IMG/VR virus record: IMGVR_UViG_3300017917_001123
Location: 248,001 to 312,000 of that record
Reading direction: 5' to 3' (one strand)
DNA length: 64,000 nucleotides
Numbering within the stretch: the first letter of the stretch is position 1; every line of letters begins with the position of its first letter. Shown in pieces: positions 1 to 23,146 of this stretch. Position numbers and translations under genes: made by a program. The notes beneath the pieces were generated by a model. That model did no database searches. It worked only from the letters and a program-made list of their open reading frames with translations, and had not been told where the DNA came from.

Positions 1-486
1 AGTTAACTTAAATTCAAAGTCTACGTTATTATAACACGAATTGTTAATCCAGTCATTAATTACTTTATAAACATCGGTAAAAGGAATACCTGTATCTGTG
101 CTAACCGCATCTTCTAACATTGAAATGGTTAAATGTAATAGAGTTACTTTTGGATCTAGGCTCAGTGAACGGCAACGTTCTGCTAGCAGTTTCTTTTTAC
201 GGCTGTAGTCGCTCTGTATAAGTTGGTCATACTGCCCTGCGATACTGCCCATAACTACAAGATTAGTTTTACCAGCAAGCGCATCTAGCAAAGGCAGTTG
301 TCCTGCGTTAGTGTTCAAGATTACTATGTCGCAAGTTTCTGCTACTGGTATAACCTTGCTAACGTCTTGCTCTAAGTCTAATCCTGAAAGTCTGCTAGCA
401 CCAATAACTTCGTGCCCGTCCTTAATAAATTGACCAAAGAGGTACTTACCTAGCCCACTAGTGTGGCCTGTAATGAATATTCTCAT
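1..486 (-). CDS. short-chain dehydrogenase/Rossmann-fold protein (3' end outside window)
   Basis: Manual translation from ATG at 486: MRIFITGHTSGLGKYLF..., an N-terminal TGxxxGxG NAD(P)-binding motif; open to position 1; ATGA overlap with the upstream ORF. Not in the ORF track because the stop lies outside the window. Confidence 0.7.
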   Translation of the reverse strand, partial: MRIFITGHTSGLGKYLFGQFIKDGHEVIGASRLSGLDLEQDVSKVIPVAETCDIVILNTNAGQLPLLDALAGKTNLVVMGSIAGQYDQLIQSDYSRKKKLLAERCRSLSLDPKVTLLHLTISMLEDAVSTDTGIPFTDVYKVINDWINNSCYNNVDFEFKLT

Positions 487-1100
487 ATCTGTCCTGTTAT
501 TTTTAATAGAGCAGGCATGTCTTCTCTCTTAACTGAAAAGAACATGTGTACTCTAGGAGTTGTATCTTGGTTCTTAACGCTGTGCATTAATGTTGTATCT
601 AATGCCCAAGAGGATCCATCTGCCGGATAGTGTTCCCAACTTATAGGTTGTCTGTTCTCGTCGTCCCACGTGAAGAAACTCTTAGGAGGACTGTAAATTG
701 GAAAGTGTATGTGCCAAGCATCGTCGGTATGCGACTCGATATAGTTTCCCCCGGGTGTTTCTGATATGCCTAGTCTATAGGCCATTGGGATCTTTTCTAA
801 CAATCGTTCGGCAATACCGAAAACCATATCAGTTCTTTTCTTGCCGTCTGTAAAGTCGCTGGTTAAAACATTCCACGGAGCACATATCTGATCGTCATTC
901 TTTAGATATGTTGTCAAAGCCCAACCGCTGGCCATCTTTGTTAAATCGATGTTTGGATCGTTGTAGGCTTCGCGCTTGATGTATTGCTTCTGTTCTGTCG
1001 CAACCCATTTACGATCAGCAAACTTAGTCTTAATGATATCATAGAACTCTCTTAGTTCGTTAATATCTGCTGTGATGTTTAACTTTATTTGCCTATCCAT
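483..1100 (-). CDS. 2OG-Fe(II) oxygenase / Asp-Asn beta-hydroxylase-like cupin
   Basis: HxD (SHTD), HIHFPI strand, distal H (LMHSVKN) and R (PRVH) in DSBH order. Confidence 0.6.
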   Translation of the reverse strand: MDRQIKLNITADINELREFYDIIKTKFADRKWVATEQKQYIKREAYNDPNIDLTKMASGWALTTYLKNDDQICAPWNVLTSDFTDGKKRTDMVFGIAERLLEKIPMAYRLGISETPGGNYIESHTDDAWHIHFPIYSPPKSFFTWDDENRQPISWEHYPADGSSWALDTTLMHSVKNQDTTPRVHMFFSVKREDMPALLKITGQI

Positions 1101-1141
1101 GAAAATATTTATAGGTGCTCTAGCCTAGCTTAAATATTTGT
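1101..1141. promoter_or_regulatory. back-to-back T4-late-like promoters
   Basis: TATAAATA on minus (1113-1106) 5 nt before ATG 1100; TAAATA on plus (1131-1136) 5 nt before ATG 1142; no SD. Confidence 0.6.
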
Positions 1142-2194
1142 ATGGCCTTCTACAACACAATCAAAGAGTTAGACATAGAACACAGCGCAGTTTGTAATGC
1201 GGCCTGTCCTCAGTGTACAAGAGAGCTTCGCCCCGGAGACTACAGTTGGTTTAACCAAACATGGCTTCCTACAGAGTTTTACCAAGAGCGTATTCCACAA
1301 TATGTATTAGACAACTTAGAAACTATCTTCTTTAGTGGCATGGTAGGCGATCCTTGTGCGGCTCCTAACTTCTTAGAAGTGTGTAAGGTTATTAAAGAAC
1401 GTGCTCCGCATATCCATATTAAGATTAGTACTAATGGAGGTATGCGTAGTCCTGCTTGGTGGGCAGAGCTTGCTAGTATATTAGGGCAAGGTAGTTGGGT
1501 TCGTTTTGCTATTGACGGACTAGCAGACACTAATCATATCTATCGTGTTAATGTAAGTTGGAATAAAGTTGTTGCTAACGTAGATGCGTTTATTAAATCT
1601 GGCGGAGAAGCAGAATGGCAGTATATTGTGTTCAAACACAACGAGCATCAAGTAGAAGAAGCAAAGAAATTATCTGAAGATATGGGCTTTGCTAGATTTG
1701 TTATTAGACGCAGTCATCGCTTCTTGCTAGATGCTCTATTTGAAACACAGTACGTGGGTATCTCTGTTCCTACTAATGACAAATATGTACATCCGTTGAT
1801 TCTACAAAAGAAGAAAGTGTTTAACATTGTAGATGCGTTAAAAGTATCCAACGATAGTAGTGTAACTTGTGAAGTACAAGGACGCAAGAGTGTTTACATA
1901 TCAGCAGATGGTTGGGTGTTTCCTTGTGTATATACAGGAACATGTGTTCACTTAATGAAGACACGCAGTCTACATGACGGTTGGACTAAGTTATGGGAAG
2001 AGCATGGCGGAGATAAGATTAATCTATTAAAGAATGATTGGAACAGCATACTAAACGGTACGTTCTTTAATGGCATACAAGATAGTTGGAATGTAGGATA
2101 TGAGCAAGGACGACTTGCCGCATGTGGGTTATTTTGTAGTCAATCAGCCGCACGTATATTTGATAACAATGTAGACTACGATATAATAGAATGA
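1142..2194 (+). CDS. radical SAM protein with C-terminal twitch/SPASM-like domain
   Basis: CNAACPQC, GDP, ISTNGG, FAIDG; C-terminal C...YISADGWVFPC...ACGLFC. Confidence 0.85.
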   Translation: MAFYNTIKELDIEHSAVCNAACPQCTRELRPGDYSWFNQTWLPTEFYQERIPQYVLDNLETIFFSGMVGDPCAAPNFLEVCKVIKERAPHIHIKISTNGGMRSPAWWAELASILGQGSWVRFAIDGLADTNHIYRVNVSWNKVVANVDAFIKSGGEAEWQYIVFKHNEHQVEEAKKLSEDMGFARFVIRRSHRFLLDALFETQYVGISVPTNDKYVHPLILQKKKVFNIVDALKVSNDSSVTCEVQGRKSVYISADGWVFPCVYTGTCVHLMKTRSLHDGWTKLWEEHGGDKINLLKNDWNSILNGTFFNGIQDSWNVGYEQGRLAACGLFCSQSAARIFDNNVDYDIIE

Positions 2195-3831
2195 CATATC
2201 AAGTAATATTATTTTCTGATACACCAGGAGCCGATTGGTTAAGTAGAGGCTATGGCACCTATCGCCTTGCTACAGAGCTACGTGAAGCGGGCTATTCTGT
2301 GTTGACTGTAGAGTATGCGTCTAGTCTTACTTGGGACAGGTATTGTGAAATTATAGATAGGACAGTAACAGCTGATACATTAGTTGTAGGATTTAGCACT
2401 ACGTGGTTTCCTTATCGCAGTCTTAATAAAATTAATCCTAGATACTCTGTAGGATTCAAGAGCAACAAAGAACATACAGACTTTAAACATGATCAACATC
2501 CATGGTATTACGAAAGTCTAAGCCATTGCTTCAGTCAAGAAGATCCGGACAAGTGGGTTGACTATGTTAAGACACGCAATTCAAAAGTTAAATGTGTTGT
2601 CGGCGGAGCAAAGAGTAACGAGTATGTGTTCGAACCTAAAGTAGATAACATCTTTATTGGCTTTAGTGAAAACATGATGTTGGACTATGTTAACAGCATT
2701 AGTGGTAAAGGACCTAAGCGCATCTTTAATAAGATTATTAACTATGATGTAAAAGCAAGTGATCCTCGTTTTGACTTTAAGAGCTCGTTTACACGTTATG
2801 TAGATACTGACTGTATTGTTCCGGGAGAAATGCTTACTATCGAGTTTGCTCGTGGTTGTATCTTTAACTGTAACTTCTGTAGCTATCCGCATCGCAATCA
2901 GCAGACTGCTGACTTTATCAAATACAAAGAAACTATCCGTGCTGAACTAATGGAAAACTACGAGCGTTGGGGCTGTACTCGTTATATGATTACAGACGAT
3001 ACATTTAACGATGCTACAGAAAAGTTAGTCTACATTAAAGAAGTTATTGAAACATTGCCATTCAAGCCTAAGTTTTGGGCATACTGTCGTATGGACTTGT
3101 TCCATAAGTACCCTGAGCAAATACAGTTAATGAAAGACATTGGTGTTACTGAAGTCTACTACGGTTTAGAAACTTGGCACGATAAAACTGCTAAGGCCAT
3201 TGCCAAAGGTGGTAAGCTACAGAACAAGATCAATGCTATGAAGAAAGCTCGTGAAGTATGGGGTAATGATGTTTATGTTACTGTAGGACTTGTAATGGGT
3301 TTACCACATGATACAGTTCAAAGCGTAACTGATGCTTGCGAATGGTTTAAAGCAGAAGGACACAATTATGTCGATTGGTTTAATGTGAGCTCGTTAACTG
3401 TGTATCCTCCTACAGACAATCAAAAGTACAAGTTCTTTAGTGATATCGAAAAACACTTAGACAAATATGGTTACACATTTCCAGACATTGAAAACAATCC
3501 AATCAATTGGCATCGTGCCGATGACGGAGACATTAATAGTAAAGAACAAGCAGACAAACTAATGGACTATTGGATGAAGGAACTAATGCCTTATCAAAAG
3601 AATAGAAAGCAGATGTGGTTTGCTGGTGCGCTTACTGTAATTGATCCTCGCTTAGACTTTGAAAATTTACTTAAAGCTGAGAAGGATGAATGGAACGATA
3701 TCTTTAGTGCGTTTAAGCCTACTGAATACTATTGGAAGTATGTTAATTACTATTACTGGCCTAAACTGCTAGCGATGCTTGATACATCTGTGCCTAGTCG
3801 TTCATTAGATGTTGCGTGTGTTTCTGGATAA
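2191..3831 (+). CDS. cobalamin-binding-domain radical SAM protein (class B-like)
   Basis: N-terminal YRLATELREAGY..V, GFS, VVGG B12-domain pattern; EFARGCIFNCNFC; DDTFN; GLET; GLPHDT. Confidence 0.8.
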   Translation: MTYQVILFSDTPGADWLSRGYGTYRLATELREAGYSVLTVEYASSLTWDRYCEIIDRTVTADTLVVGFSTTWFPYRSLNKINPRYSVGFKSNKEHTDFKHDQHPWYYESLSHCFSQEDPDKWVDYVKTRNSKVKCVVGGAKSNEYVFEPKVDNIFIGFSENMMLDYVNSISGKGPKRIFNKIINYDVKASDPRFDFKSSFTRYVDTDCIVPGEMLTIEFARGCIFNCNFCSYPHRNQQTADFIKYKETIRAELMENYERWGCTRYMITDDTFNDATEKLVYIKEVIETLPFKPKFWAYCRMDLFHKYPEQIQLMKDIGVTEVYYGLETWHDKTAKAIAKGGKLQNKINAMKKAREVWGNDVYVTVGLVMGLPHDTVQSVTDACEWFKAEGHNYVDWFNVSSLTVYPPTDNQKYKFFSDIEKHLDKYGYTFPDIENNPINWHRADDGDINSKEQADKLMDYWMKELMPYQKNRKQMWFAGALTVIDPRLDFENLLKAEKDEWNDIFSAFKPTEYYWKYVNYYYWPKLLAMLDTSVPSRSLDVACVSG

Positions 3832-5348
3832 AAGAATCTGTTGTACTGTGTTTGTCTAGCATTAGTAGCAACATTCTCACTGCCTAACTTTTTAACCTTG
3901 TAGTTATAGACAACATCTAGGTGTCTTACATCTACTTCATATAAGTCCGATGCTCTTAAGGCAAGCGATCCCTGTAACGAACCTGTTTGATTTACTCCCC
4001 AATCTAATACATAAGGATTCAATCCAAATAGTTTTTCTTTGTGATTGTAAACAGTAAACGCATCTGCCATCTCTCTAACACGAGCATAGCTTAGATTGTC
4101 ATTCTCCCAATTAAGCACTTGATTAACTTGTACTAGGTCGTTATGTCTATAGTTTAAATCTTTAAGCACGTTGGCAGATTCTCTATAACCATAGCTCTTC
4201 CAATCCATCGATATCTTGCTAGGTTTATCAACAAATGTATTAACAGGAATCTCTAATGGGTTTACATCGACTGCTTGCCCTTGCCAATTGTCCACAAGCC
4301 ATTTGAATGTTCTAGTAATAGACTCTTCTGTTTCGTGTGGCAGTCCTAATATAAAAGCTGTAACAGCTCTGTATCCGCCGTGTTCTTCAAAGTATTTGCG
4401 TATGTCTAACAGGCCTTGCTGTAGCTTTTCAGGCTTCATTCCTTTGCCTACAGTCTTACCTGCTTGATGATTAAATGTTTCAATGCCGTAGTAGTGCCCA
4501 TTGAAACCCATGCGTGATGCGTGTTCCCAATCCTGTGGACGTGATGTTAGTAAGTCTGCTCGCATAAATCCACTAAGCCATGGCTTGAACGGTAATTGTT
4601 CTGTAGCATCAGCAAACTTAAGAATCTTTTCACTGCGATCATTAAACGTTTCATCTGCTACAAAATAGTTTGTTGTACCAAATCTATCGTAGGCATCACG
4701 CATTTGTTCTATGTAATCGTCGGCATCTCTAGTATAGTCGCCCTTAACACCTAGCACAGGAAAGTTACAATAGTCACATTCAAATATACAGCCACGAGCA
4801 AACTCTACAGTAAGCCATTCCCATTCCTGGATGTAATCTCTGTCCTCGTATTTGATCATTAAAGACTTCATAGGAAACGCAGGATACAAATGGATAGCAT
4901 CAATAACCTTCTTGCCTTTAGCAAGCCAATTGATATCTAGTTTAATACTACTGCGGGATTCGTTGCCAGCAACAACCTTCATTAACTGTAATACAGCAAG
5001 TTCGCCAAAGCCAAAGATATAATAGTCAAAGTAATTGCTTTCCATTTTAGGGCGAGCCTGACTACCATATAACGTAGTAACATCTGGGTAGGTCTCTTTA
5101 ATCCACTTAAGGAACGACTCCATCTTCTCGTCCCAGTAGCAGAAGAAACAACTAAAGCCTATAATCTTTGTTTCTGCTGTAACCCTAGAGCGTGTGAACT
5201 CTTGTAGTTCTTCGAGTGTAAAATCTGTTGCCCATTCTAATACTTCAACATCCCATCCATGCTCTCGCATATATGTGGCAATGCGATATCCGCCGCCCGG
5301 GCGTCTTAACCACATTGTATGTGTATTGAATATTAATGAGTGTGGCAT
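3753..5348 (-). CDS. cobalamin-binding-domain radical SAM protein (class B-like)
   Basis: YRIATYMREHGWDVEV, GFS; EFARGCIFECDYC; DETFN; GIET; GLPHET. Confidence 0.8.
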   Translation of the reverse strand: MPHSLIFNTHTMWLRRPGGGYRIATYMREHGWDVEVLEWATDFTLEELQEFTRSRVTAETKIIGFSCFFCYWDEKMESFLKWIKETYPDVTTLYGSQARPKMESNYFDYYIFGFGELAVLQLMKVVAGNESRSSIKLDINWLAKGKKVIDAIHLYPAFPMKSLMIKYEDRDYIQEWEWLTVEFARGCIFECDYCNFPVLGVKGDYTRDADDYIEQMRDAYDRFGTTNYFVADETFNDRSEKILKFADATEQLPFKPWLSGFMRADLLTSRPQDWEHASRMGFNGHYYGIETFNHQAGKTVGKGMKPEKLQQGLLDIRKYFEEHGGYRAVTAFILGLPHETEESITRTFKWLVDNWQGQAVDVNPLEIPVNTFVDKPSKISMDWKSYGYRESANVLKDLNYRHNDLVQVNQVLNWENDNLSYARVREMADAFTVYNHKEKLFGLNPYVLDWGVNQTGSLQGSLALRASDLYEVDVRHLDVVYNYKVKKLGSENVATNARQTQYNRFFYPETHATSNERLGTDVSSIASSLGQ

Positions 5349-6856
5349 TATCTGTTTAGTTTCTTGTCAATGTAGCGTCTTGCGATTGAATGTCTAGCTT
5401 GTGCTAGTGTTTCTTTTCCGTAACCCTCTTCCCAACGTACAAATAAATCTTTTCTAGATGCCGACAGGGATTCATCTAATGATAAACCCATACCTGAAGC
5501 GTAGTCTAGTGTATATGGATTTAATTTAAACCAGTCTTCGTTTTCAATGCTTCTCAAGTATTGTGTTGCTAGATCTTTGGCTTTGTCGTAGTCCATGTTG
5601 TCGTTAACCCAGTTTAAATTTGTTGTACTGTGCATAACATTACACTCGAGTGATATATGATCGTATTGATCTGCTGGCTTTTCTCTGTAACCCCACTTGT
5701 GCCAGTCCTGTGCTAACTTGCTAAACTTTTCTGTATATTCGTCAATTGGAATTTCTAAAGGATAGCACTCAATGTTCTCTCCTTGCCAATTGTTACGTAA
5801 CCATTCGGCGCCTTCTTTAAATGTTTCTTCTGTTTCGTAGGGTAGTCCTACGACTAGAGCAATACATCCTCTATAGCGTTGCTGTCCATGCGATTTAAAG
5901 TAATCTCGTACTTCTAAAAGGCCTTCACGTAGTCTGTGCGGATTCATGCCTTTACCGATTGCTTTGGCTGTTGGGTGATTCATGCTCTCAATACCATAGA
6001 AATGCCCTAGCATACCTAAACGTACTAACGCATCCCAGTCTTGCTTACGCGATACTAACAAATCTGCTCGCATAAACCCTGTAAAGAATGGTTTAAAGGG
6101 TAACTTATCAGTTACATCGGCAAACTTTTGAATTTTCTCTGTGCGATCATTAAATGTTTCGTCTGAACAATAGTATAAGGTAGTTCCCCAGCGTTCGTAG
6201 TTTTCTAACAAATGATCGTGATAGTCTTGTGCGTCTCTAGTGTAATCTCCCTTAACACCTAGCACAGGGAAGTTACAATACAAGCATTCAAACATACAAC
6301 CTCGACTAAACTCGCAGGTTAGATATTCCCAGGGCTCGATAAAATCTCTATCTTGGTATTTGATACGCAAGCTCTTCATAGGAAACGCAGGGTAGTAATC
6401 GTTAGCACTAATAAACTTCATACCGCGTCCAAGATATTTTGGATCTAACTTAATTCCGCCTTTTGGTGTATTGCCAACAAAACTAGCAGTTAAGGCTAAT
6501 AGAGCGTGTTCGCCGTAGCCGTGTACGTAATAATCTACTTTAGGATATTGGAATTTAGGTTTGCCATTGCCGCCAACAACAACCCGGACGTGTGGCCACT
6601 TCTGTTTAATATAATCGATAAACAGATTAAACTTCGGATTCCAGTAACTAAAAAAGTATGCGAAGCCAACCCAAACGGTATTCTTTGTAATATTTGTATT
6701 ACAAAACTCTTCAAACTCTTTTTGCTGCCATAGGTCTAGATATTCTACAACTTCAACATCCCAGCCTTCGTCACGTAATATTGTGGCAATTCTATAAGGG
6801 CCGCCAGGCCTGTTAAAGTACATTGTATGACAGTTAAACAATAAACAGTGGTTCAT
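5348..6856 (-). CDS. cobalamin-binding-domain radical SAM protein (class B-like)
   Basis: YRIATILRDEGWDVEV, VVVGG; EFSRGCMFECLYC; DETFN; GIES; GLPYET; close paralog of 3753..5348. Confidence 0.8.
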   Translation of the reverse strand: MNHCLLFNCHTMYFNRPGGPYRIATILRDEGWDVEVVEYLDLWQQKEFEEFCNTNITKNTVWVGFAYFFSYWNPKFNLFIDYIKQKWPHVRVVVGGNGKPKFQYPKVDYYVHGYGEHALLALTASFVGNTPKGGIKLDPKYLGRGMKFISANDYYPAFPMKSLRIKYQDRDFIEPWEYLTCEFSRGCMFECLYCNFPVLGVKGDYTRDAQDYHDHLLENYERWGTTLYYCSDETFNDRTEKIQKFADVTDKLPFKPFFTGFMRADLLVSRKQDWDALVRLGMLGHFYGIESMNHPTAKAIGKGMNPHRLREGLLEVRDYFKSHGQQRYRGCIALVVGLPYETEETFKEGAEWLRNNWQGENIECYPLEIPIDEYTEKFSKLAQDWHKWGYREKPADQYDHISLECNVMHSTTNLNWVNDNMDYDKAKDLATQYLRSIENEDWFKLNPYTLDYASGMGLSLDESLSASRKDLFVRWEEGYGKETLAQARHSIARRYIDKKLNR

Positions 6857-7557
6857 AAGCTCTTTGCTATTTTAAGGTGGCTTTCAATTCCTGGATGTTT
6901 AAGATCTCTCCCAACATCAATAATTTCAAAATTGTTAATTTCAACTAGTTCTGTATCGTAGCACATAGCACGAACAGCATCTTTAATTATATTTGCGTAG
7001 TGAAAAAAGTAATCTGTACAACTTACAGAATTAAAGTTTTCAACTTCTTGTTTTAATTCTTTAATGTTCTTAAGGGTATTATCACTCCACGGACCTAGTG
7101 GAATGATTTCATCCCCTAGACCTCTAAAAGTTCTTGCCAGTTCGGGCCATTGAATAATAATACGTTTTGGTTTCTTTTTAATATTAAGAAACCATTTAGA
7201 TAGATTATAAGAAACTAAATCTACTCCTGCGCCTTCTACTGCTAGGTTGTAGTAATCTACATTATTGTTTTTAGAAACAATGTATGGATAGGTGTTTTCT
7301 AAAGGCACGGCAGAACCCACAGTTAAACTACAACCAACAAACAAATAAAAGTCTTTGTCTAATTGATCAAATTCTTTGGACCGGTGTCCGCAAGAGTTTC
7401 TGCTGTATTCTACTCTTGTAGAACGGTACAACCAATTAGAGTCAACAACTTTTAAATTTCTCTGATACAAATCTTCCGTATCAAAACCGAAGTCGCCGAA
7501 CTCAACTGTGCCAGTTTTAAAGTAGCCGATGAGGTTATTGTCATAAAGTTTTAACAT
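6853..7557 (-). CDS. SGNH/GDSL-like hydrolase or acyltransferase
   Basis: Block I-like FVGCSLTVG, block II-like NLAVEGAG, block V-like DLKHPG. Confidence 0.55.
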   Translation of the reverse strand: MLKLYDNNLIGYFKTGTVEFGDFGFDTEDLYQRNLKVVDSNWLYRSTRVEYSRNSCGHRSKEFDQLDKDFYLFVGCSLTVGSAVPLENTYPYIVSKNNNVDYYNLAVEGAGVDLVSYNLSKWFLNIKKKPKRIIIQWPELARTFRGLGDEIIPLGPWSDNTLKNIKELKQEVENFNSVSCTDYFFHYANIIKDAVRAMCYDTELVEINNFEIIDVGRDLKHPGIESHLKIAKSL

Positions 7558-7571
7558 GGAAAATTTTAACC

Positions 7572-7597
7572 ATAAATATTCGTTGTAGCATATTTAA
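7572..7597. promoter_or_regulatory. divergent TAAATA late-type boxes
   Basis: ATAAATA plus at 7572-7578 and TTAAATA minus at 7597-7591, in the divergent gap; farther from the starts than in other pairs. Confidence 0.45.
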
Positions 7598-7612
7598 CGC
7601 TGTAGTTAATGG

Positions 7613-8215
7613 GTGATAATTTATATGGACATGGTAATTGTAACAAAATCAAAAACTCTAGTAGAATTTACAAAAAAGTTATGGGATAGATATTATTCCC
7701 AGCCAGAGAAATGGATTGAACTAAGCCCAGGTACATATTACACACAGCCTTACATAGAACTTACAGACGACGAATGGGAAGAAGCAAAGAAGGAAGCACC
7801 CTTTGTAAGTCGTCGGTTGTTTATGGGTTATATGGAACCAGGTATCACAGCAATTACACACGTTGACAATCACGATACAGATCCTCCTCATATTGCTAAT
7901 TTTAACATCCTACTAGAAGCAGACGGTGACAACCATCATACAGCATATTACGACCATGTCGACGGCCCGTGGGACGCTAAAGAAAAAGGTTGGGTGTGCG
8001 TTGACAAGTCGAAGTTAACTGAAACATTTAGATACTCACTGCCATTAGACACACCGACTTGGTTTAGAGTAGACAAGTTACATGACATTACCAACAATGG
8101 TAAAACTAGAAGAAAAGGCGTCATGTGGGTAGTTGAAGTTGGTTGGACTGATGAAAAATTTAAACAGTGGTGCGAAACAAACAACATAGATTACGATATC
8201 AGATACAAAATATGA
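7613..8215 (+). CDS. putative 2OG-Fe(II)/cupin oxygenase (start may be 7625 or 7631)
   Basis: HVD...NFNILL...LHDITN..TRR; paralog of 10708..11262 (LEADGDNHHTAYY vs VESDGDNHSTRYY). Confidence 0.5.
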   Translation: MIIYMDMVIVTKSKTLVEFTKKLWDRYYSQPEKWIELSPGTYYTQPYIELTDDEWEEAKKEAPFVSRRLFMGYMEPGITAITHVDNHDTDPPHIANFNILLEADGDNHHTAYYDHVDGPWDAKEKGWVCVDKSKLTETFRYSLPLDTPTWFRVDKLHDITNNGKTRRKGVMWVVEVGWTDEKFKQWCETNNIDYDIRYKI

Positions 8216-8847
8216 GCTACGTTATCCAACAACACTTTCCTATTAAAACATACAAGACACACTTCGATCCTATTGGGGAACTAAAGGTATCTATGATGAC
8301 TAAGTTAACCAAACTATGGGAACAAGCGGCGGAAGTATCAAACGAAATTACAGACTGTGTTGTTGGACAAACAGATTGTGGATACGTAATTGATCCACAC
8401 TTAGAACGTTGGGAAGAAACACAAGAGCTTATTGCGTTCTTAAACAAACACGTTCAAACATATTGGGAAGTTTTAGGCTATAGCAAAACATTACAGCCTT
8501 ATGTTCATAGCATGTGGAGTAACAGATCGCATGAGCGTAGTTATATTCATTCTCACATACACAGCCCTATGCCAATTGCCGGTACAGTTTATCTAGAAGT
8601 AAACAAGGATATGGGCAACTTTGTGTTAGAAGATCCAAACGAAATGCTGTTACGTTCGCAACCTGTGGACGACCCTGATTCTATTGCTGAAGACGAAATT
8701 GATGTTGCTGTGGGAGATGTTTTAATGTTTCCAGGATATGTGCGTCACAGAACGATTAGTAACAAAACAACAACTCCTAGGATTACATTACCTTTTGTAA
8801 TTGGGTGTAAAGGTACATTCTCAACTGATCATTGGCGTTCAGCATAA
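8212..8847 (+). CDS. 2OG-Fe(II) oxygenase, TIGR02466-like
   Basis: MWSN...HSHIH..IAGTVYL, GDVLMFPGYVRHRT, RITLPF; start re-chosen at the ATGA overlap (8212). Confidence 0.75.
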   Translation: MSYVIQQHFPIKTYKTHFDPIGELKVSMMTKLTKLWEQAAEVSNEITDCVVGQTDCGYVIDPHLERWEETQELIAFLNKHVQTYWEVLGYSKTLQPYVHSMWSNRSHERSYIHSHIHSPMPIAGTVYLEVNKDMGNFVLEDPNEMLLRSQPVDDPDSIAEDEIDVAVGDVLMFPGYVRHRTISNKTTTPRITLPFVIGCKGTFSTDHWRSA

Positions 8848-9518
8848 ATGATTACACGCTGGCCGCGTACAAACTGTTCGTAATCATTGCTGTCTGGAAC
8901 ATATAGTTCTGTTTTAAATCCAAACATCTTTAAAATATTAAGCACAGCATCTAAGTCTGGAACTAGTGCTATGTCTGTTGGTCCGCCTATGTTTGAATCA
9001 CTGTAGTCGCTGACCAATGTAAAAGTACCCAACGGACTTCTTATAGATTTATATGTACCATCTTCTACGTGAGGCTTGCTAGAACTAGCAACCTGTGTTT
9101 CAATAACACAATACTTCTTTGCCATATTGTTAATGCGGCGAAGTATCTCTATAGGATTCTCTACATGATACAGGACACCGTAACACAATGCCAAGTCTAC
9201 TCTAGCAACGTGTTGTTCTATGAGAGCTTGTTTAAATGTAGAACGGCCGTTGCCTAGTTTGCTGTAGATGTATTGTGCTTGTTCAATAGAATCAGTAAAT
9301 CGGTCAATTCCTTCTACCTTAGGAATGTGCTTTTCTAATTCTAATGTAAAGTATCCTTGATGGCAACCCAAGTCTATTGCTGACTCGCAAGGGTGTGTAT
9401 CCAAGAATTGTTGTAACGCTTTAATTCTAGTTTCGTGTAACGGTAACACTTCTGCTGGAAGCATACATTCAATACCGTCAATTGGAAAAGGATAAAACCA
9501 TCCGTTAAGCTGTGCCAT
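8829..9518 (-). CDS. class I SAM-dependent methyltransferase
   Basis: IDLGCHQGYF motif I, GIDRF, DLALCYGVLYHV, CVIETQ. Confidence 0.8.
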   Translation of the reverse strand: MAQLNGWFYPFPIDGIECMLPAEVLPLHETRIKALQQFLDTHPCESAIDLGCHQGYFTLELEKHIPKVEGIDRFTDSIEQAQYIYSKLGNGRSTFKQALIEQHVARVDLALCYGVLYHVENPIEILRRINNMAKKYCVIETQVASSSKPHVEDGTYKSIRSPLGTFTLVSDYSDSNIGGPTDIALVPDLDAVLNILKMFGFKTELYVPDSNDYEQFVRGQRVIIYAERQ

Positions 9519-9557
9519 GATGTATTTAAGGCGTCAAAAGTACCCAATAAATAGATC
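9519..9557. promoter_or_regulatory. back-to-back late-type promoters
   Basis: TTAAATA minus (9529-9523) 4 nt before ATG 9518; TAAATA plus (9548-9553) 4 nt before ATG 9558. Confidence 0.6.
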
Positions 9558-10730
9558 ATGGTGCCGCTAATCAATCAATTTCGTAATGCTAATCTAGAAC
9601 TTCTATTCGACGAAATAAAGGCCCGCGGAGGCACGGTACTAAAACCTACTATTAGTTTGTGCCATAAATGTCACTATCATATACCTGCTTATACCTATCA
9701 CGTAAACAATCAGCTTTGGTTAGTTAAAGTTTGTAAGTCGCACGGTGTAAGCCATCACATGATTGAGCGTGATTACGAATTCTATTCTAATCTAGTTTAT
9801 ACTGAAAGCATTTTTAGTTTTACCAAACTTAATGTAATGACAGAAGTTACAGATCGTTGTAATGCTAATTGCCCACATTGTTATCATATACCAGACAACA
9901 CACCTGACGAAAGTACGGAAACAACAATCAATAGAATACGCAGTTGGTATAAGCCAGGAACTAGTATTATACTAGCAGGTGCTGAGCCTGTGTTACGTAA
10001 TGACATAGCTGAATTAATTCAAGAGATTAACGTTAACTTTCCAGACAGTGAAATAGCAACTCTTAGCAACGGAATACGTTTTAGTGATAAAAAATTAGTT
10101 CGCAAGGTAATGGACTCTAATTTAAAAGCAGTATTGATTGGACTAAATCATCCTAGCTATCTAAACAATCCTACAATAAGAAATAAACAATTAGAAGGTA
10201 TCAATAATTGTTTAGAAGAGGGACTTCCTTTATATTACATTGGATACACAATGAGTAGCACAAGTGAGCTACACGACATTCTAAATGAGATTGTTAGTAT
10301 GCCTTGGCAACCTAGACAGTTTAGAATACGTTACGGAAGTGATATTGGACGTTATCCAGAACAAGAACGCTTGTACGTCAGCGATACCTATAAGTTAATA
10401 AAGAAGTGGTGCGAGGACAATGGCAAACAGTTTGAAGATATGTTAGGAGACAATAATCTTTATCATACAATGGTAAAAGTTGAAGGCAAACCTATTCGAG
10501 TTATTCAATGGTGTGATGAAACAGATATTCACATGGAAGAACTTAGAACAGGACCCTATTGTGATTTTGTAGGAGATGGTATTACAAACTTCCTACATCA
10601 AGTTATTCGCAGAGATATATCAAAAAACAAACATATTGTGTTGCCCGATAAACCTATGAGTAGATATACAATAGATAGCGTGTTTGATAAAACAGAGTTA
10701 GACTTAAATGAATATTGTAACAGAAATTAA
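9558..10730 (+). CDS. radical SAM protein, MJ0619/Tes (GDGT-MAS)-family-like, with N-terminal rubredoxin-like CxxC-x20-CxxH
   Basis: SLCHKC..HIPA....K.C.SHG...D.EFY; EVTDRCNANCPHC; AGAEPVLRNDI; SNGIRF. Confidence 0.75.
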   Translation: MVPLINQFRNANLELLFDEIKARGGTVLKPTISLCHKCHYHIPAYTYHVNNQLWLVKVCKSHGVSHHMIERDYEFYSNLVYTESIFSFTKLNVMTEVTDRCNANCPHCYHIPDNTPDESTETTINRIRSWYKPGTSIILAGAEPVLRNDIAELIQEINVNFPDSEIATLSNGIRFSDKKLVRKVMDSNLKAVLIGLNHPSYLNNPTIRNKQLEGINNCLEEGLPLYYIGYTMSSTSELHDILNEIVSMPWQPRQFRIRYGSDIGRYPEQERLYVSDTYKLIKKWCEDNGKQFEDMLGDNNLYHTMVKVEGKPIRVIQWCDETDIHMEELRTGPYCDFVGDGITNFLHQVIRRDISKNKHIVLPDKPMSRYTIDSVFDKTELDLNEYCNRN

Positions 10731-11262
10731 CTCGCCTATATTAGTAGAGCGTTCTAAACAGTTATGGGAAACTATTTCTAAGATACCTTTGGAATATCAT
10801 AACGGTGTTGCTATATTAGAAGACTACTTAGACGAGCATACTGATATTCCCTGGTTAAGTGGTAAAGTAGGCTGTATTATATTTGAGCCGAATTCTACTT
10901 GCCCTATACATTGCGACGATCACGAAAGTGTAGCATACAATCGAAGTCTAAACATATTAGTAGAAAGCGACGGGGATAATCATTCTACACGATATTACAA
11001 ATGGAAACACGGAGAATGGAATCCTAAAGAGCATCAAGCATTATTTGACAAAGACGTAACTGATTTAAGTTTAGTGTTTGAATTTACTGTAACTAAACCT
11101 ACGCTGTTCTATAATCAAATATTACACGATGTACACAATTATGGTAATAAACGTCGAGTAATGATAATGTGGCTAATTGAAAAATCAGTAACTGACGAAG
11201 AAATATTTTCCTGGTTAGATAAAAATGGAATTACAACCAAAACAATTTTTAAATCCGAATGA
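10708..11262 (+). CDS. putative 2OG-Fe(II)/cupin oxygenase
   Basis: PIHCD, SLNILV, LHDVHN..KRR; paralog of 7613..8215. Confidence 0.5.
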   Translation: MNIVTEINSPILVERSKQLWETISKIPLEYHNGVAILEDYLDEHTDIPWLSGKVGCIIFEPNSTCPIHCDDHESVAYNRSLNILVESDGDNHSTRYYKWKHGEWNPKEHQALFDKDVTDLSLVFEFTVTKPTLFYNQILHDVHNYGNKRRVMIMWLIEKSVTDEEIFSWLDKNGITTKTIFKSE

Positions 11263-11818
11263 CTATAAGTTTCAATACATGTTGCCCTATGTATTAGAAA
11301 CTGCTCAAAAAGAATTAAAAGAATTTTTAGAAACTCATAGTCCTACGGAATTTGCTGACCTTAAATGGTTTGAACAGCAGTACGGCTACGAACTACCCTT
11401 ACAAGACATTATGAAACTATGGTATGCTGTTCCAGTATTAAGAGCAGGTACTACAACAGAATGGTCTTCATTACTGCCTAAGCTCACTGGTGCGGCACAG
11501 GCATTACCGGGCGTTGTTAATTTTAGTCTTAATGCTATTGCCCCTGGCGGACAAGTTCCAGAGCACAGTGATTATACATATGACATGAGAAAAGATTTAA
11601 GCAAAACAGATCTTGCTTATGTGATTCTCATGGCTGTTGATATTCCTAGTACAAATATAAAAGAGTGCGGATTTAAAATTGCCAACAACGAGTTTTTAAT
11701 TAGAACAGATGATATAATTGCGTTTGATGGAGCATTACCGCACAGCGGATGGAATTTTACAGATAAATGGCGTTATACTATTAATATTGATATTAAACAA
11801 GAGTACTGGCATGTTTGA
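11225..11818 (+). CDS. aspartyl/asparaginyl beta-hydroxylase-like 2OG oxygenase
   Basis: IAPGGQVPEHSD, IAFDGALPHSGWN, RYTINIDI. Confidence 0.7.
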   Translation: MELQPKQFLNPNDYKFQYMLPYVLETAQKELKEFLETHSPTEFADLKWFEQQYGYELPLQDIMKLWYAVPVLRAGTTTEWSSLLPKLTGAAQALPGVVNFSLNAIAPGGQVPEHSDYTYDMRKDLSKTDLAYVILMAVDIPSTNIKECGFKIANNEFLIRTDDIIAFDGALPHSGWNFTDKWRYTINIDIKQEYWHV

Positions 11819-12335
11819 GTATAAAAATTATCCTAAGGTTCCTAAGAACATTGTTGACGAAATTGTAGAAGAAGCTAACAAGCAATCTCTTACTGGATTC
11901 TCCGATAAAGTTAATTCAGCAGTCAAAGAAGCATACGGCAATATTGTTGATACTAATTTAGACGGTGTTGCTACAATGACTATGTTTACAAATGATAAAC
12001 TAACAGACTGGGTAAAGAATAATGTCACAGATAAATTTAACGCAGTTCATGTTCAGTGCTTTTCAAACGGCACATACTTTTTCCCGCACGTTGATCTACT
12101 AAGAACTAGAGCTTTAAATTACATACTTAAAACTGCCGATGCCAAAACAGTTTTTTACAAATCTAAAAACAATATTGAAGTTAAACCTAATACTGTTATT
12201 TCCTATCAGGATATAGAGGTTGTAAATACTCGTACATTCGAACCTTATGAATGGCATGAATTAAAAGTAGACAACATACACAGCGTTGAAAACATTAACG
12301 GAACTAGAATAGCAATCACAGTGAGCTTTTTATGA
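11811..12335 (+). CDS. putative 2OG-Fe(II) oxygenase
   Basis: FPHVD..R..ALNY, IHSVEN, RIAITVS; start re-chosen at ATG 11811. Confidence 0.55.
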   Translation: MFEYKNYPKVPKNIVDEIVEEANKQSLTGFSDKVNSAVKEAYGNIVDTNLDGVATMTMFTNDKLTDWVKNNVTDKFNAVHVQCFSNGTYFFPHVDLLRTRALNYILKTADAKTVFYKSKNNIEVKPNTVISYQDIEVVNTRTFEPYEWHELKVDNIHSVENINGTRIAITVSFL

Positions 12336-12943
12336 TTTATATTGGTAACTTTAAAAATTGGCTAGACGAAAATAAAAATATCATCGATAAGATGTTAGGC
12401 GTAGCCACAGGGGAAAGAAACGGAACGTATCACGAAACTGAAATACAACAAATGTATGGTGATCGCAGGCCAGCACCACCTAAAGAAGAAGATCTATATA
12501 AAGAAACACTTGATCTAGCACAACTTTGGGAAGGCGCAGGTTATAAAGTAGAAAGAGTGGGATGGGAAATGTTTTACGAAAGTCATTTAGGTAAGTTTAA
12601 TCCTCCATTCCCTGTTAATTCTAAATATGAGCATTGGTTTTGTAAAATGAGTCCTGGAGATATTCTTCCAATGCATGATGATCGCTTTGAAGGCAAAACG
12701 CTTGAAGAACTTTTATCACAAGGAACAACAGTTAAACGATATTGGATGGCATGTCAGGACGAATTACACGGACACGTATTGGCGTATAAGAATACTCTGC
12801 TAACTGGTTACAAGGCAGGAGATTTATATATGTTTGAAAAAGCCAATGACTTACACGGTTCTTGTAACTTAGGATTTGTTCCTAAGCTGTCCTATCAATT
12901 AACAGTTATTGAAACTAATTTTGATCGTAATGCGGTAAAATAA
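12332..12943 (+). CDS. putative 2OG-Fe(II) oxygenase
   Basis: KMSPGDILPMHDD, RYWM, GDLYMF, LHGSCN, PKLSYQLT. Confidence 0.6.
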   Translation: MIYIGNFKNWLDENKNIIDKMLGVATGERNGTYHETEIQQMYGDRRPAPPKEEDLYKETLDLAQLWEGAGYKVERVGWEMFYESHLGKFNPPFPVNSKYEHWFCKMSPGDILPMHDDRFEGKTLEELLSQGTTVKRYWMACQDELHGHVLAYKNTLLTGYKAGDLYMFEKANDLHGSCNLGFVPKLSYQLTVIETNFDRNAVK

Positions 12944-14061
12944 TCTAACCCAGCATCAAGCGGCAACATAATCAGTACGCCGCTTTTATCATTATTCCAC
13001 AGTCCCATATGTAACCCGTGCTTATAAAAAAGTTTTTCTTTTTCTAAGTAATCGGGTATTTCTTCATTTAAATCTAATTTGTAACAAACACCAAACGATT
13101 TAAAACTTTTAATGATGCCTTGTTTACACAAATCATTAAACAATGTGTCTGCCTGGGCCTTGACTGTTTTATGTTTTGCTAGAATATTTTCTTGCTCTAG
13201 GACCTTTAGATATTCCAGCACACTTAGAATTCCGGCCATTGGAAAACTATAACTAAATCCGTGTAGTAAAGTTTCTAGTTTAACAACATCCGCCACTTGT
13301 TGATTACATAGTGTAGCACTTAGCGGAAAGTAACCTCCGGTGATTCCTTTCCCAATACAGAAAATATCTGGTTTTATATCAAATGTTTGAAACCCAAATA
13401 TTGTTCCTGTCTTGCCTGCGCAGAATGCTATATCGTCTATTATCAATAGCGTACCTGTATCATCACATATTTGTCTTAGGTGTTTAAAAAACTCGTTACC
13501 TAAATTGTTTAGGCCCGCCTGCCAACTACATGTTTCAATAATTACTGCCGCAGTATTTGTATTGATTTCATTAAGACCGCTAATAGTTTTACAGTCTGGA
13601 TGCCTTCCGAAAGTATCTGTTAGATAATCACTGCCGCTAACACTAGCACTCATAAATGTGCTTCCGTGATAACTATCTCTAAAACCCACAATAGTTTTTC
13701 TTTTGCCCTTCCAATATAGTTGTACTAACTTAATGGCCCCTTCTACAGCATCACTTCCGCTGAGAGAGTACATGGGATAAAAACCCCCACTTAGATTATA
13801 TAACTTATTTGATAATTCAATTGTAGCCGAATTCGCAGTTACAAAATCGCTTTGGCAAAATGGGAGGTCCTTTAGTTTTTCTGTTACTCGTTCTAGTATA
13901 TCAGTTCTTTTAAAACCTAAAGGAAAGCATCCGCTACTTCCTAAACCTAAATCAATAACATCTTTACCGTTGGAATCAATAAACCCGTAGGGAGTTACTT
14001 CCTTGATATTCTTTACAGGAGGCAACGGATCATTGATGCTAAACGGAAATAATTGTTTCAT
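12895..14061 (-). CDS. class-III PLP aminotransferase (BioA/omega-amine type)
   Basis: SGSDAVEGAIK, SYHGST, LLIIDDI...GKTG, PDIFCIGKGITGGYFPLSA (Schiff-base Lys). Confidence 0.9.
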   Translation of the reverse strand: MKQLFPFSINDPLPPVKNIKEVTPYGFIDSNGKDVIDLGLGSSGCFPLGFKRTDILERVTEKLKDLPFCQSDFVTANSATIELSNKLYNLSGGFYPMYSLSGSDAVEGAIKLVQLYWKGKRKTIVGFRDSYHGSTFMSASVSGSDYLTDTFGRHPDCKTISGLNEINTNTAAVIIETCSWQAGLNNLGNEFFKHLRQICDDTGTLLIIDDIAFCAGKTGTIFGFQTFDIKPDIFCIGKGITGGYFPLSATLCNQQVADVVKLETLLHGFSYSFPMAGILSVLEYLKVLEQENILAKHKTVKAQADTLFNDLCKQGIIKSFKSFGVCYKLDLNEEIPDYLEKEKLFYKHGLHMGLWNNDKSGVLIMLPLDAGLDYFTALRSKLVSITVN

Positions 14062-15191
14062 TCGTATCTTTTTATATATGGAAATAATTTACGATAATCG
14101 GTACCTCTAGTTTTATCATATAGATCTAAAACTCTAGTACGTTCTTTAACTACTTCGTCAAAATCGTCAGGCACTACGTTGACTATTTTATGTATGTCAT
14201 TAAACTCTTCTGGCAATGTATTTTGATTTACTATATCTACCAGTTGTTGTTTTTGTTCCAACTCTAAATACTCTGGACTAAAGTAATCGGGAGCGATAAC
14301 ATAATTAATCTGCGTAAAACTATAGTTTCGCATCTGTTTAAACTCTTCAAATCTTTTAAAAATGTCTACTAAGTCAAATATATTAAAAATAGAAAGAGTA
14401 AAACAAATACCCCATTTAATGTCTGTTTCTGCTGAAAGAGTAACAATATTCCTTTCTAATGTTTCTAAATCGGCAGGGAATCGTATGAAATTAAACTTAG
14501 CAGGATCTATATGATCATAACTAACACCGACTGTTGTTTTAGGAAAGTCTGCAAGTCTTTTTAATATTCCTGTGCTTGATAAATTAGAAGTGGCACTAAT
14601 TGGTAAATTTGTATAACCTTTGTCCTTACAATATTCCAATAACTTAATAGTCATCGGGCTAGCAAACGGCTCACCGCCCTGTAAGTTAATAATAGAGCAT
14701 CCTGGTAATGCTGAGTCTAAGTGCTGTCCTACATTGTCAACATTGTTTATATCTAATTCATCTCTGTCAATCTCAGATAACCACAAGGGCAACTTAACAT
14801 TATCTTTCTTCCATTGTTCTACTTCTTTAGCATGTTGAGAACTTGCTAAATGGTTACAGGTAATACATTTGAGATTACAATCGTTGCCTGTCTTAATATC
14901 TAATTCAATTGGCACAGGCAAGGGAACATCTAATACTTGATTGTTCTGTTGTCGTCTGCTAACATACCCTTTGTCTTCAACAGTCCAACATCGTTCGCAG
15001 TTAGGATTTTTAACACCATTTAATAAATCGTGACGTAGTTTATTATAGTACTCGCTGTTCCATACTTCTTCAATTGAATGATGCTCAATATTATAACCTG
15101 TAGGTATTTTGCTAAGACAGCAAGGCAAATAATCACCGTTGCGCTCTGTGGCAATATGAATAAAAGGTTTGATACAGTAAGTATTACTCAT
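14058..15191 (-). CDS. radical SAM protein with N-terminal twitch domain
   Basis: N-terminal C..PF...NG...CC...WNS...C.RCW; CNLKCITC; GGEP. Confidence 0.85.
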   Translation of the reverse strand: MSNTYCIKPFIHIATERNGDYLPCCLSKIPTGYNIEHHSIEEVWNSEYYNKLRHDLLNGVKNPNCERCWTVEDKGYVSRRQQNNQVLDVPLPVPIELDIKTGNDCNLKCITCNHLASSQHAKEVEQWKKDNVKLPLWLSEIDRDELDINNVDNVGQHLDSALPGCSIINLQGGEPFASPMTIKLLEYCKDKGYTNLPISATSNLSSTGILKRLADFPKTTVGVSYDHIDPAKFNFIRFPADLETLERNIVTLSAETDIKWGICFTLSIFNIFDLVDIFKRFEEFKQMRNYSFTQINYVIAPDYFSPEYLELEQKQQLVDIVNQNTLPEEFNDIHKIVNVVPDDFDEVVKERTRVLDLYDKTRGTDYRKLFPYIKRYE

Positions 15192-16374
15192 AGTCTTTAA
15201 TATAAGGAAATAAACTTCTGTAGTCCGTACTGCGGAGTTTGTCGTACATTCTTAAAATACGAGTACGTTCTTTAACCACATGATCAAAGTCAATAGGATG
15301 TTCGTCAAGTATCCTACATATATTAGCAATATCTTCATTTGCCGAATAAGGTATTAACAGTTCTTTTACTTCCTGACGCTGTTCTGGCTCCATATACTCT
15401 ATGCTTAGATAATCAGGCTGTTGTACAAGTCTATAATAAGAGTGTGTATTAAGTTTGCCTTCTTTGTGTAATGACTCGTACATATCAATTAGTCTAGGTA
15501 GTTGATATATGTTTAATATAGATATAGCAAGCGAAATGCCACGTTGTATATTTGTTTCACACAGTTTATCAAAGTTGTTAAGAAATTGATTATAGTCAGC
15601 AGGATATCTAATATATTTGAAATAGTCTGCTCTATCGTGATCCCAACTAATAAACAATGATGCTTCTTTAAACTTGTTGAGCTTATCTAATATATTGTTT
15701 GATATGTTTGTTAAGTTAGTAACAAACCCTATCTTTAAATGTGTGTAATCTTGTTCTATACAGTAGTCTAGTATAGCATGTAAGTCAGGACTGCTTAAAG
15801 GTTCGCCACCGTCAATTAACAGTATGTCTACTTTACCTAATACATTTTTAAGGTTGTTAGACATATTGCCTTTTGGTGCTTTCATTTTACTACCAAACTG
15901 TGCGTCAATATACTCTATCCATTCTGGCACAGGCAATCCTTGCTTACGCATTAATTTAACTTCTGTTTCGTGCGAGGAACTGTGATACGGTGTACACATC
16001 AAACATTTAAGATTACAGGTGTTGCTTAACTTTACATCTAATTGCGACGGTGCTATATTGAGGTAGCCGTTGTTATTTTTACAATCAGCAATAGCATTAT
16101 TAAGTTCTTCGTTAAGTGGAAAGTTGCTTTTAACTCTTTTACTAACTAATCCTCTAGAGTCAGCTTCCCAGCATCTAATACAGTTTGAATTCTTAACTCC
16201 GTTAAGTAAGTCCATTCTTAGATTACGGAAGTATTCATTATTCCAACCTGTTTCGATATCTTCTGTATAGATATTAGAATTAGATGAACAGTTACTTTGT
16301 TGACAAGCCTGTAGATCTCCGTTACGTTCTGTACAAACGTTAATAAACGGAAGAATACAAAAAGTATCACTCAT
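15184..16374 (-). CDS. radical SAM protein with N-terminal twitch domain
   Basis: Same architecture; CNLKCLMC; GGEP; paralog of its neighbours. Confidence 0.85.
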   Translation of the reverse strand: MSDTFCILPFINVCTERNGDLQACQQSNCSSNSNIYTEDIETGWNNEYFRNLRMDLLNGVKNSNCIRCWEADSRGLVSKRVKSNFPLNEELNNAIADCKNNNGYLNIAPSQLDVKLSNTCNLKCLMCTPYHSSSHETEVKLMRKQGLPVPEWIEYIDAQFGSKMKAPKGNMSNNLKNVLGKVDILLIDGGEPLSSPDLHAILDYCIEQDYTHLKIGFVTNLTNISNNILDKLNKFKEASLFISWDHDRADYFKYIRYPADYNQFLNNFDKLCETNIQRGISLAISILNIYQLPRLIDMYESLHKEGKLNTHSYYRLVQQPDYLSIEYMEPEQRQEVKELLIPYSANEDIANICRILDEHPIDFDHVVKERTRILRMYDKLRSTDYRSLFPYIKDYE

Positions 16375-17665: not shown

Positions 17666-17673
17666 TATCAGCA

Positions 17674-17697
17674 TATTTAACTGCTAGTAAATACCTC
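17674..17697. promoter_or_regulatory. back-to-back late-type promoters
   Basis: TTAAATA minus (17680-17674) 8 nt before ATG 17665; TAAATA plus (17688-17693) 4 nt before ATG 17698. Confidence 0.55.
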
Positions 17698-19586: not shown

Positions 19587-19609
19587 ATAATTAATTATCG
19601 TAAAAAATT
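19587..19609. promoter_or_regulatory. divergent gap with variant TAATTA boxes
   Basis: Minus strand reads GATAATTAATTATATG: TAATTA 5 nt before ATG 19586. Confidence 0.35.
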
Positions 19610-21592: not shown

Positions 21593-21610
21593 GATGTAAA
21601 TACTTAGCTT
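21593..21610. promoter_or_regulatory. overlapping divergent late-type boxes
   Basis: TAAATA plus (21597-21602) 8 nt before ATG 21611; TAAGTA minus (21606-21601) 8 nt before ATG 21592. Confidence 0.5.
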
Positions 21611-23121: not shown

Positions 23122-23146
23122 TAAAAAGAAACGGTTATTCTGTCCT

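Follow-up and report, generated by a model that had tools for sequence, protein, structure and literature searches.

Do phages run cobalamin-dependent radical chemistry of their own and, if so, on what kind of molecule? The question is raised by three adjacent open reading frames (ORF1, ORF2 and ORF3) in a stretch of 64,000 nucleotides (hereafter the window) that comprises bases 248,001-312,000 of the 331,570-bp IMG/VR virus record IMGVR_UViG_3300017917_001123. An earlier note, made from the sequence alone, had read their products as three cobalamin-dependent (class B-like) radical S-adenosylmethionine (radical-SAM) paralogs. Class-B radical-SAM enzymes are responsible for some of the most difficult methylations by which natural products, lipids and cofactors are made, and to our knowledge every characterised one is cellular. 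What is new here is a large, almost purely viral family with class-B architecture and cofactor motifs. On the basis of predicted structures and sequence comparisons, we propose that the three genes would belong to a phage-specific class-B family, most likely methylating unactivated carbon, in a tailoring island; taken as a whole, we regard this explanation as evenly poised between right and wrong.

Architecture and cofactor pocket of the three proteins

The coordinates and lengths first given for the three ORFs proved exact (Table 1), and their paralogy was confirmed by sequence search, with ORF2 and ORF3 matching at E=4e-174 (49% identity by BLASTP) and ORF1 matching ORF3 at E=2e-51 and ORF2 at E=2e-47 (28-30% identity). 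The radical-SAM domain PF04055 is present in all three ORFs (41-69 bits; cut-off: 29.5 bits). The B12-binding domain PF02310 scores 35.9 bits in ORF3 (cut-off: 32.1 bits) and 21.9 bits, below the cut-off, in ORF2, and has no match in ORF1. Residue conservation was counted across 63 ORF2/3-type and 51 ORF1-type sequences, in which the three cysteines of the CxxxCxxC motif are invariant and no other cysteine is; PF02310 matches 47 of the 63 ORF2/3-type members at E ≤ 0.01. Among the shared patterns that the earlier note had quoted, EF.RGC.F.C..C and, as YR.A..(L/M)R..G..V, the N-terminal pattern occur in all three proteins, while each of the others holds for two: GFS for ORF1 and ORF2 (GFA in ORF3), VVGG for ORF1 and ORF3 (LYGS in ORF2), and GLP.ET for ORF2 and ORF3 (GLPHDT in ORF1).

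AlphaFold (AF2) models were computed with family alignments for ORF3 and ORF1 and reached a mean predicted local distance difference test score (pLDDT) of 92.1 and 91.0, respectively, with disorder in ORF1 confined to residues 80-95 (pLDDT <50) and the extreme C-terminus. Both models show a Rossmann domain of five strands, then the radical-SAM barrel and, at the C-terminus, a helical domain, and both align from residue 1 with CysS, TokK, TsrM, OxsB and MgmA; ORF2 would adopt the same Rossmann-barrel fold, judging by its identity to ORF3. Foldseek searches against the PDB placed CysS (4e-16), TokK, MgmA/QCMT, OxsB and TsrM at the head of the ORF3 matches, followed by AprD4 and then by RimO and MiaB; for ORF1 the order was TsrM, MgmA, OxsB, AprD4 and CysS. 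Against AFDB Swiss-Prot, the top 19 matches all belong to the B12-binding radical-SAM class, characterised and uncharacterised members alike, and include BchE, BchQ/R, TokK, ThnK, HpnR, HpnP, Fom3 and OxsB; TsrM follows at rank 24, below the first methylthiotransferases (rank 20). A family profile searched against PDB sequences found TokK as best match (E=1.2e-6). The best NCBIfam matches are all B12-type radical-SAM models, namely those for ladderane lipid (TIGR04072), PhpK (TIGR04479), HpnJ, HpnR, BzaD and BchE, but with 50-61 bits at best, against curated cut-offs of 360-650, the proteins belong to none of the NCBIfam B12 radical-SAM equivalogs, the TsrM-type and QCMT models included. The structure prediction and Foldseek comparison that had been suggested as a check did not refute the first reading: the N-terminal domains of the ORF1 and ORF3 models fold as B12-type domains ahead of the barrel, the best structural matches are cobalamin-dependent enzymes, and a class-B (OxsB/TsrM/TokK-type) architecture is supported for the three ORFs.

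Assignment to other radical-SAM families might be suggested by the label "YgiQ" that homologues bear at JGI, and by the presence of RimO and MiaB lower in the ORF3 match list. Methylthiotransferase-like (MiaB/RimO), YgiQ/UPF0313-like or HemN-like enzymes are nonetheless highly improbable. A Pfam domain search over the 63 ORF2/3-type members returned PF04055, PF02310 and one stray GumK_N match only. The cysteine triad of the MiaB/RimO/MtaB methylthiotransferases is absent, there being no conserved cysteine beyond CxxxCxxC, and neither UPF0004 nor TRAM was matched. YgiQ/UPF0313 proteins would carry flanking Radical_SAM_N and DUF3362 domains, and HemN-like proteins lack the N-terminal Rossmann domain and have HemN_C; none of these three domains was found in the 63 members. 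Domain search and fold comparison together effectively refute this reading and leave the N-terminal domain as B12-type rather than YgiQ- or HemN-like, in agreement with the earlier note.

Structures of OxsB, TsrM and TokK define the motifs expected of a cobalamin pocket: G/A-x-S/T-x-X in the loop after β3, which gives the lower-face residue under the cobalt; one or more glycines on β4, which shape the dimethylbenzimidazole (DMB) pocket; a GE pair on α5; and a long β1-α1 loop without a histidine ligand (PMC9204698, PMC13331322). In the ORF2/3-type sequences, the β3 loop has G64 in 62/63, S66 in 48/63 (alanine in ORF3), F68 in 51/63 and W72 in 59/63, the last aligned by HMMER with the lower-face residue Trp76 of TokK. 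On β4, G95 is invariant (63/63) and position 96 is glycine in 37 and serine in 15 sequences (serine in ORF2); G113 (63/63) and, on α5, E116 (61/63) are conserved. The ORF1-type sequences show G67 in 48/51, S69 in 45/51, the GG pair in 51/51 and 50/51, G157 in 50/51, and glutamate or aspartate at position 160 in 51/51. The α5 pair reads GE in ORF2 and ORF3 and SE in ORF1, and the β1-α1 loop spans 9-12 residues with no conserved histidine.

Three points weigh against cobalamin binding. ORF1 has an insertion of ~39 residues exactly within the β3 loop; ORF2 (G-S) and ORF3 (GFA) each depart from the motifs at one position; and AprD4, which binds no cobalamin, is structurally as close as any cobalamin enzyme (equal best Z, 21.4). 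The fold alone is therefore insufficient to establish binding, since AprD4 shares it. The alternative that follows is a cobalamin-independent enzyme whose Rossmann domain would be only structural or substrate-binding, as in the diol dehydratase AprD4 or ArsL-type proteins, and we consider it unlikely, if still to be taken seriously. AprD4 is of similar size (~450 amino acids), and the aminotransferases, deacetylases and carbamoyltransferase of its pathway are enzyme types found in the phage islands too. Against this stand the GxS, GG and GE residues and the aromatic residue or tryptophan of the β3 loop, retained across two subfamilies less than 30% identical, and the PF02310 matches noted above; in the comparison with AprD4 itself, which covered fold and HMMER searches, no sequence similarity was detected. 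Because the GxS, GG and GE residues are conserved over such a distance, the pocket is likely used, and we judge it fairly likely, from motifs and models, that the domain binds cobalamin.

If cobalamin is bound, the N-terminal Rossmann domain would hold it in the base-off/His-off state above the barrel with its CxxxCxxC-bound [4Fe-4S] cluster and SAM. SAM cleavage would yield a 5'-deoxyadenosyl radical that abstracts a hydrogen from the substrate, the substrate radical would pick up the methyl group of methylcobalamin, and a second SAM would re-methylate cob(I)alamin. The ORF1-type and ORF2/3-type subfamilies might differ in the position that they modify or in the intermediate that they accept. 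A cobalamin-dependent radical reaction other than methylation (ring contraction, cyclisation, or C-C or C-X bond formation) would be compatible with the same architecture, which OxsB, BchE and HpnJ share, and BchE is the top AFDB Swiss-Prot match. We hold this to be distinctly unlikely: methylases make up the majority both of the characterised class-B enzymes and of the top structural matches, and the tandem paralogue arrays of the family (up to four copies) resemble multi-methylase pathway sets. Pathways in which several methylases occur together are known, as with ThnK/L/P. Identity to BchE, HpnJ and OxsB is ~15%, and the phage gives no sign of their pathways. Methyl transfer to unactivated carbon is the most likely reaction of the three enzymes.

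Two features of the gene ends are recorded here. ORF1 and ORF2 are convergent, with 3' ends overlapping by 79 nt (window 3753-3831). On the ORF2 side the overlap falls in a non-conserved C-terminal tail, the final ~30 residues matching nothing in ORF3 or the homologues, and in the ORF1 model the terminal 10 residues are disordered.

Table 1. Coordinates of the three ORFs, their motifs and neighbouring features (window numbering unless stated otherwise; G000:C1 denotes record numbering and L005 the locus that holds the upstream part of the island).
Feature	Position	Strand	Remarks
ORF1	2191..3831	+	546 amino acids; Rossmann B12-type domain, radical-SAM barrel and helical C-domain (predicted)
ORF1 N-terminal Rossmann domain, with insertion	2191..2715	+	G67-F-S69, G138-G139, S159-E160
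ORF1 CxxxCxxC radical-SAM cluster motif	2857..2880	+	C223, C227, C230
ORF2	3753..5348	-	531 amino acids; ORF3 paralogue, 49% identity
ORF2 N-terminal Rossmann domain	4959..5348	-	G-F-S, W72, G-S, G-E
ORF2 CxxxCxxC motif	4767..4790	-	C187, C191, C194
ORF3	5348..6856	-	502 amino acids; PF02310 and PF04055
ORF3 N-terminal Rossmann (B12-type) domain	6467..6856	-	residues ~1-130; G64-F-A66 after β3, W72, G95-G96 on β4, G115-E116 on α5
ORF3 CxxxCxxC motif	6275..6298	-	C187, C191, C194
Exact shared 20-mer, ORF2 copy	4741..4760		encodes conserved PVLGVKG stretch after the Cys motif
Exact shared 20-mer, ORF3 copy	6249..6268		
Twitch/SPASM-type radical-SAM gene	1142..2194	+	350 amino acids; stop overlaps ORF1 start by 4 nt
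SGNH/GDSL-like protein	6853..7557	-	234 amino acids; weak DUF6473 match; stop overlaps ORF3 start by 4 nt
Radical-SAM/cupin island	G000:C1 ~239,534-277,391 (window -8466 to 29391)		~38 kb
In-window part of island	1..29391		
Asp/Arg beta-hydroxylase-like cupins	483-1100; 10708-12943; 17635-18240; L005 11159-11833; L005 18483-18935		
NodU/Nol-type carbamoyltransferase	24623-26098		tailoring-type, around island
Flavin (Trp) halogenase-like protein	35679-36929		tailoring-type, around island
Class III aminotransferase	12895-14061		tailoring-type, around island
SDR sugar-nucleotide epimerase/dehydratase	40306-41106		tailoring-type, around island
Cytidylyltransferase-cupin fusion	L005 7893-8651		tailoring-type, around island
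IscA-like protein	34581-34901	-	beside island
IscU/NifU_N protein	34968-35366	+	187 bits
Second IscA-like protein	35344-35670	+	
ATP-dependent DNA ligase	37940-39229		phrog_114, E=6e-103
Large tail-like structural genes	41958-54156		
Subtilisin-like S8 protease	47613-49181		PF00082, 101 bits
Class I ribonucleotide reductase, large and small subunits	G000:C1:313993-316610		just past the window

A viral family and an old duplication

The viral setting of the paralogs is well founded: the record derives from a pond metagenome, has a CheckV completeness of 93%, and encodes a gp23-type capsid protein ~70% identical to those of Sinorhizobium phage Phosso, Vibrio phage 2.275.O and Cronobacter phage GAP32, by which the phage is a T4-like, GAP32-like jumbo myovirus. 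Identity with an amoC phage was ruled out, the phage genome having no AmoC gene.

The extent of the family was assessed by several searches. A word-indexed search with ORF3 returned 831 proteins, all metagenomic; an exhaustive phmmer search with ORF1 returned 733 clusters at 50% identity (E ≤ 1e-30); and at least 475 loci were confirmed in IMG/VR. The nearest ESM-Atlas clusters are 100% viral, with bacterial and archaeal B12 radical-SAM families next (TM-score 0.67-0.75). No member was found among the isolate phages of INPHARED by megablast or tblastn, and PHROGs gave no match. Cellular genomes were searched with one genome per GTDB species, where matches above 30% identity (the closest at 35-42%) lie only on short contigs of metagenome-assembled genomes that are probably mis-binned phage. 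Relatives of truly cellular origin, Bdellovibrionales and Enhygromyxa among them, do not exceed 30% identity, and the neighbours of the Enhygromyxa relative, AMP-ligase and Asn-synthetase-like genes, give no functional clue. No account of B12-type radical-SAM enzymes in phages came up in literature searches. Judged by these matches, the family is large and essentially viral.

Within it, arrays are common, with 2-4 copies in 21 of the 76 viral loci in which a family gene occurs. In the IMG/VR loci L095, L096, L100 and L101, three tandem family genes are accompanied by a fourth, longer (640 amino acids) and deeply divergent paralogue, then by a 352-residue family of no assigned kind and a class III aminotransferase. 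Another ~350-kb phage (L001, 351 kb, ENA) has a single member at 10001-11500, beside homologues of Cpn10, MazG, PhoH, DnaJ, peptide deformylase and ClpB and 2.5 kb from a 1335-residue YHYH-domain structural protein.

The earlier note had inferred a recent duplication of ORF2 and ORF3 from long near-identical stretches, also at the DNA level. That description was overstated: the longest identical protein run is ~16 residues, directly past the Cys motif, and identity is 48% over a MAFFT alignment of the proteins and 57% in nucleotides, with the same codon used at only 53% of identical residues. The exact 20-mer that had been pointed out is real and lies at 4741 as given, its second copy starting at 6249 rather than 6250. 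We simulated such runs by codon resampling (protein alignment fixed; codons drawn from the genes' own usage; 5000 trials), and an identical run of at least 20 nt arose in 7% of the trials (P about 0.07), so the 20-mer is no evidence for recent duplication or gene conversion. A FastTree phylogeny of 108 family members from viral loci joined ORF2, ORF3 and the single-copy orthologue of L088 in one clade (support 96), with terminal branches of 0.56 and 0.69 substitutions per site for ORF2 and ORF3, and placed ORF1 in a separate deep subfamily with genes of L088, L104 and L107. Identity, branch lengths, the L088 orthologue and the chance expectation for the 20-mer together lead us to reject a recent duplication or gene conversion; as far as alignment and tree can tell, ORF2 and ORF3 diverged long ago, and ORF1, for which other phages have orthologues, represents a distinct deep subfamily.

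The radical-SAM/cupin island and its possible product

The 15 radical-SAM matches that the genome contains (14 over the Pfam cut-off, one below) all fall at 240-277 kb, in an island that extends upstream of the window. They comprise the three B12-type proteins, the twitch/SPASM type, HMPTM/Tes/TrsS-related proteins with an N-terminal zinc ribbon or SPASM-like motif, and others. In at least six of them the Fe-S/zinc-ribbon (SPASM-like or HMPTM-type) motif is N-terminal instead of C-terminal as usual; the best NCBIfam matches of these proteins are TrsS, Tes and HxsC.

Interleaved with the radical-SAM genes are many Asp/Arg-hydroxylase-like cupins, 2OG-FeII_Oxy_5 proteins, a class III aminotransferase, SAM methyltransferases, SGNH-like proteins, a QueC-like protein, a cytidylyltransferase-cupin fusion, a NodU-type carbamoyltransferase and a flavin halogenase-like protein. 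The pairing with 2-oxoglutarate (2OG) and cupin oxygenases remarked on in the earlier note is thus real and much larger than was seen there. Several of the Asp/Arg beta-hydroxylase-like cupins have no Pfam match and were recognised only through ESM-Atlas features or structure; the cupin families, which are 100% viral, run to hundreds of proteins. Profile-profile comparison of the unassigned island families added one further cupin (cluster 10) and a weak cupin link for cluster 4. The set of tailoring-type enzymes is reminiscent of aminoglycoside or modified-sugar pathways.

Beside the island, the IscA/IscU/IscA genes are by sequence a phage-encoded Fe-S assembly scaffold. CobS (CobS_N), CobT, flavodoxin and 2Fe-2S ferredoxin were sought in the phage genome and are all absent; with Fe-S assembly parts present and these lacking, cobalamin and reductant would have to be supplied by the host. 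This phage has no B12-dependent ribonucleotide reductase, its reductase being of class I, which would imply an aerobic host. Class II ribonucleotide reductases that depend on B12 are known from some phages, so B12 dependence in a phage would not be without precedent. The DNA ligase lies between the island and the structural genes; the tail-like genes, with the S8 protease set among them, start at ~42 kb in the window.

Synteny was compared across 78 viral loci and this genome (79 regions). Two settings recur among them: at least three island genes are present in about 30 of the 79 regions, and in a marine T4-like lineage a single family gene follows gp33-gp59-gp32 and precedes the baseplate genes. 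A short-chain dehydrogenase/reductase (SDR) sugar-nucleotide epimerase/dehydratase lies within 10 kb of the family gene in 18 of the 76 family-gene loci, island-free ones included. The 350-residue twitch/SPASM family adjoins ORF1-type genes also in L088, L104 and L107, where the tie between the viral-only family of 234-residue SGNH-like proteins and ORF3-type genes is kept as well, so that this phage and those three loci share a four-gene micro-module (ORF3-type, SGNH-like, twitch radical-SAM, ORF1-type). By synteny, the B12-type genes thus form a conserved module with the twitch/SPASM radical-SAM enzyme and the SGNH-like hydrolase inside the island.

The enzymes of the island probably serve to elaborate a single, heavily modified molecule. 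The recurrent partners (SDR epimerase/dehydratase, SGNH-like hydrolase, aminotransferase, carbamoyltransferase, cytidylyltransferase) lean towards a nucleotide-linked sugar, a glycan or another small molecule, to which we assign about an even chance. A virion or host protein is a good deal less likely as substrate, and is kept in view because Asp/Asn-hydroxylase-like cupins are so numerous and tail genes lie next to the island. No precursor gene for a ribosomally synthesised and post-translationally modified peptide (RiPP) was identified in the island, where the genes are tightly packed and overlapping, with no conserved small ORF; a RiPP-type substrate might be encoded elsewhere.

A more far-reaching proposal, which we regard as rather doubtful, is that the viral cobalamin methylases, about a dozen other phage radical-SAM enzymes, the cupins and IscU/IscA would act together during infection to make a product with dense C-methylation and hydroxylation. 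Whether a glycan, a lipid, a small molecule or a modification of virion proteins, it would be linked to host recognition or to superinfection and defence, the outcome of infection would depend on the B12 and iron status of the host, and the pathway would be a widespread, so far undescribed radical biosynthesis of aquatic T4-like phages. Should the family be active, aquatic T4-like phages would run multi-step radical chemistry, infection might be coupled to the availability of vitamin B12 and iron, and the family would be a new source of methylases for biocatalysis.

Comparison with known systems

The C-methylases TokK, ThnK and CysS of carbapenem and cystobactamid pathways are among the closest. 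They have the same Rossmann cobalamin domain, barrel and helical C-domain as the phage proteins, include the best sequence-level PDB match (TokK) and the top Foldseek matches, and share with them GG, (G)GE and the tryptophan aligned with Trp76; the thienamycin cluster also combines several paralogues with 2OG oxygenases, as the phage does. Identity is 12-16%, however, the phage proteins are 130-180 residues shorter and viral rather than actinomycete or myxobacterial, and no carrier-protein or pantetheine logic was noticed in the phage. TsrM, a Trp 2-C-methyltransferase of similar length (~540-600 amino acids), gives the best overall TM-scores (0.63-0.66, for ORF3) and is the top Foldseek match for ORF1, but it has Arg69 beneath the cobalt and uses no radical chemistry, whereas the phage family has an aromatic residue (Phe/Trp) there and is in this respect closer to TokK.

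Among enzymes with other kinds of substrate, the PhpK model (phosphinate methylation) yields the longest NCBIfam alignment for ORF3 (residues 25-355). Fom3, which acts on a nucleotide-linked substrate, is a top-10 AFDB Swiss-Prot match, and the cytidylyltransferase-like/cupin fusion of the island recalls its cytidylylated substrate. The Fom3 and PhpK models score 54-59 bits, far under the 600-bit family cut-off, and no phosphonate genes (e.g. phosphoenolpyruvate mutase) were noticed in the phage.

On the viral side, the nearest likeness is with pelagimyophages, in which variable radical-SAM cassettes and a core Asp/Asn beta-hydroxylase lie in a tail-fibre "host recognition cluster" (PMC7029224). 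That report is without B12-type domains, paralogue arrays or an island of such scale, and the phage here is a GAP32-like jumbo phage from a pond; pelagimyophages are nonetheless also T4-like and aquatic, and as their cassettes lie by tail-fibre genes, so the island described here adjoins tail-like genes.

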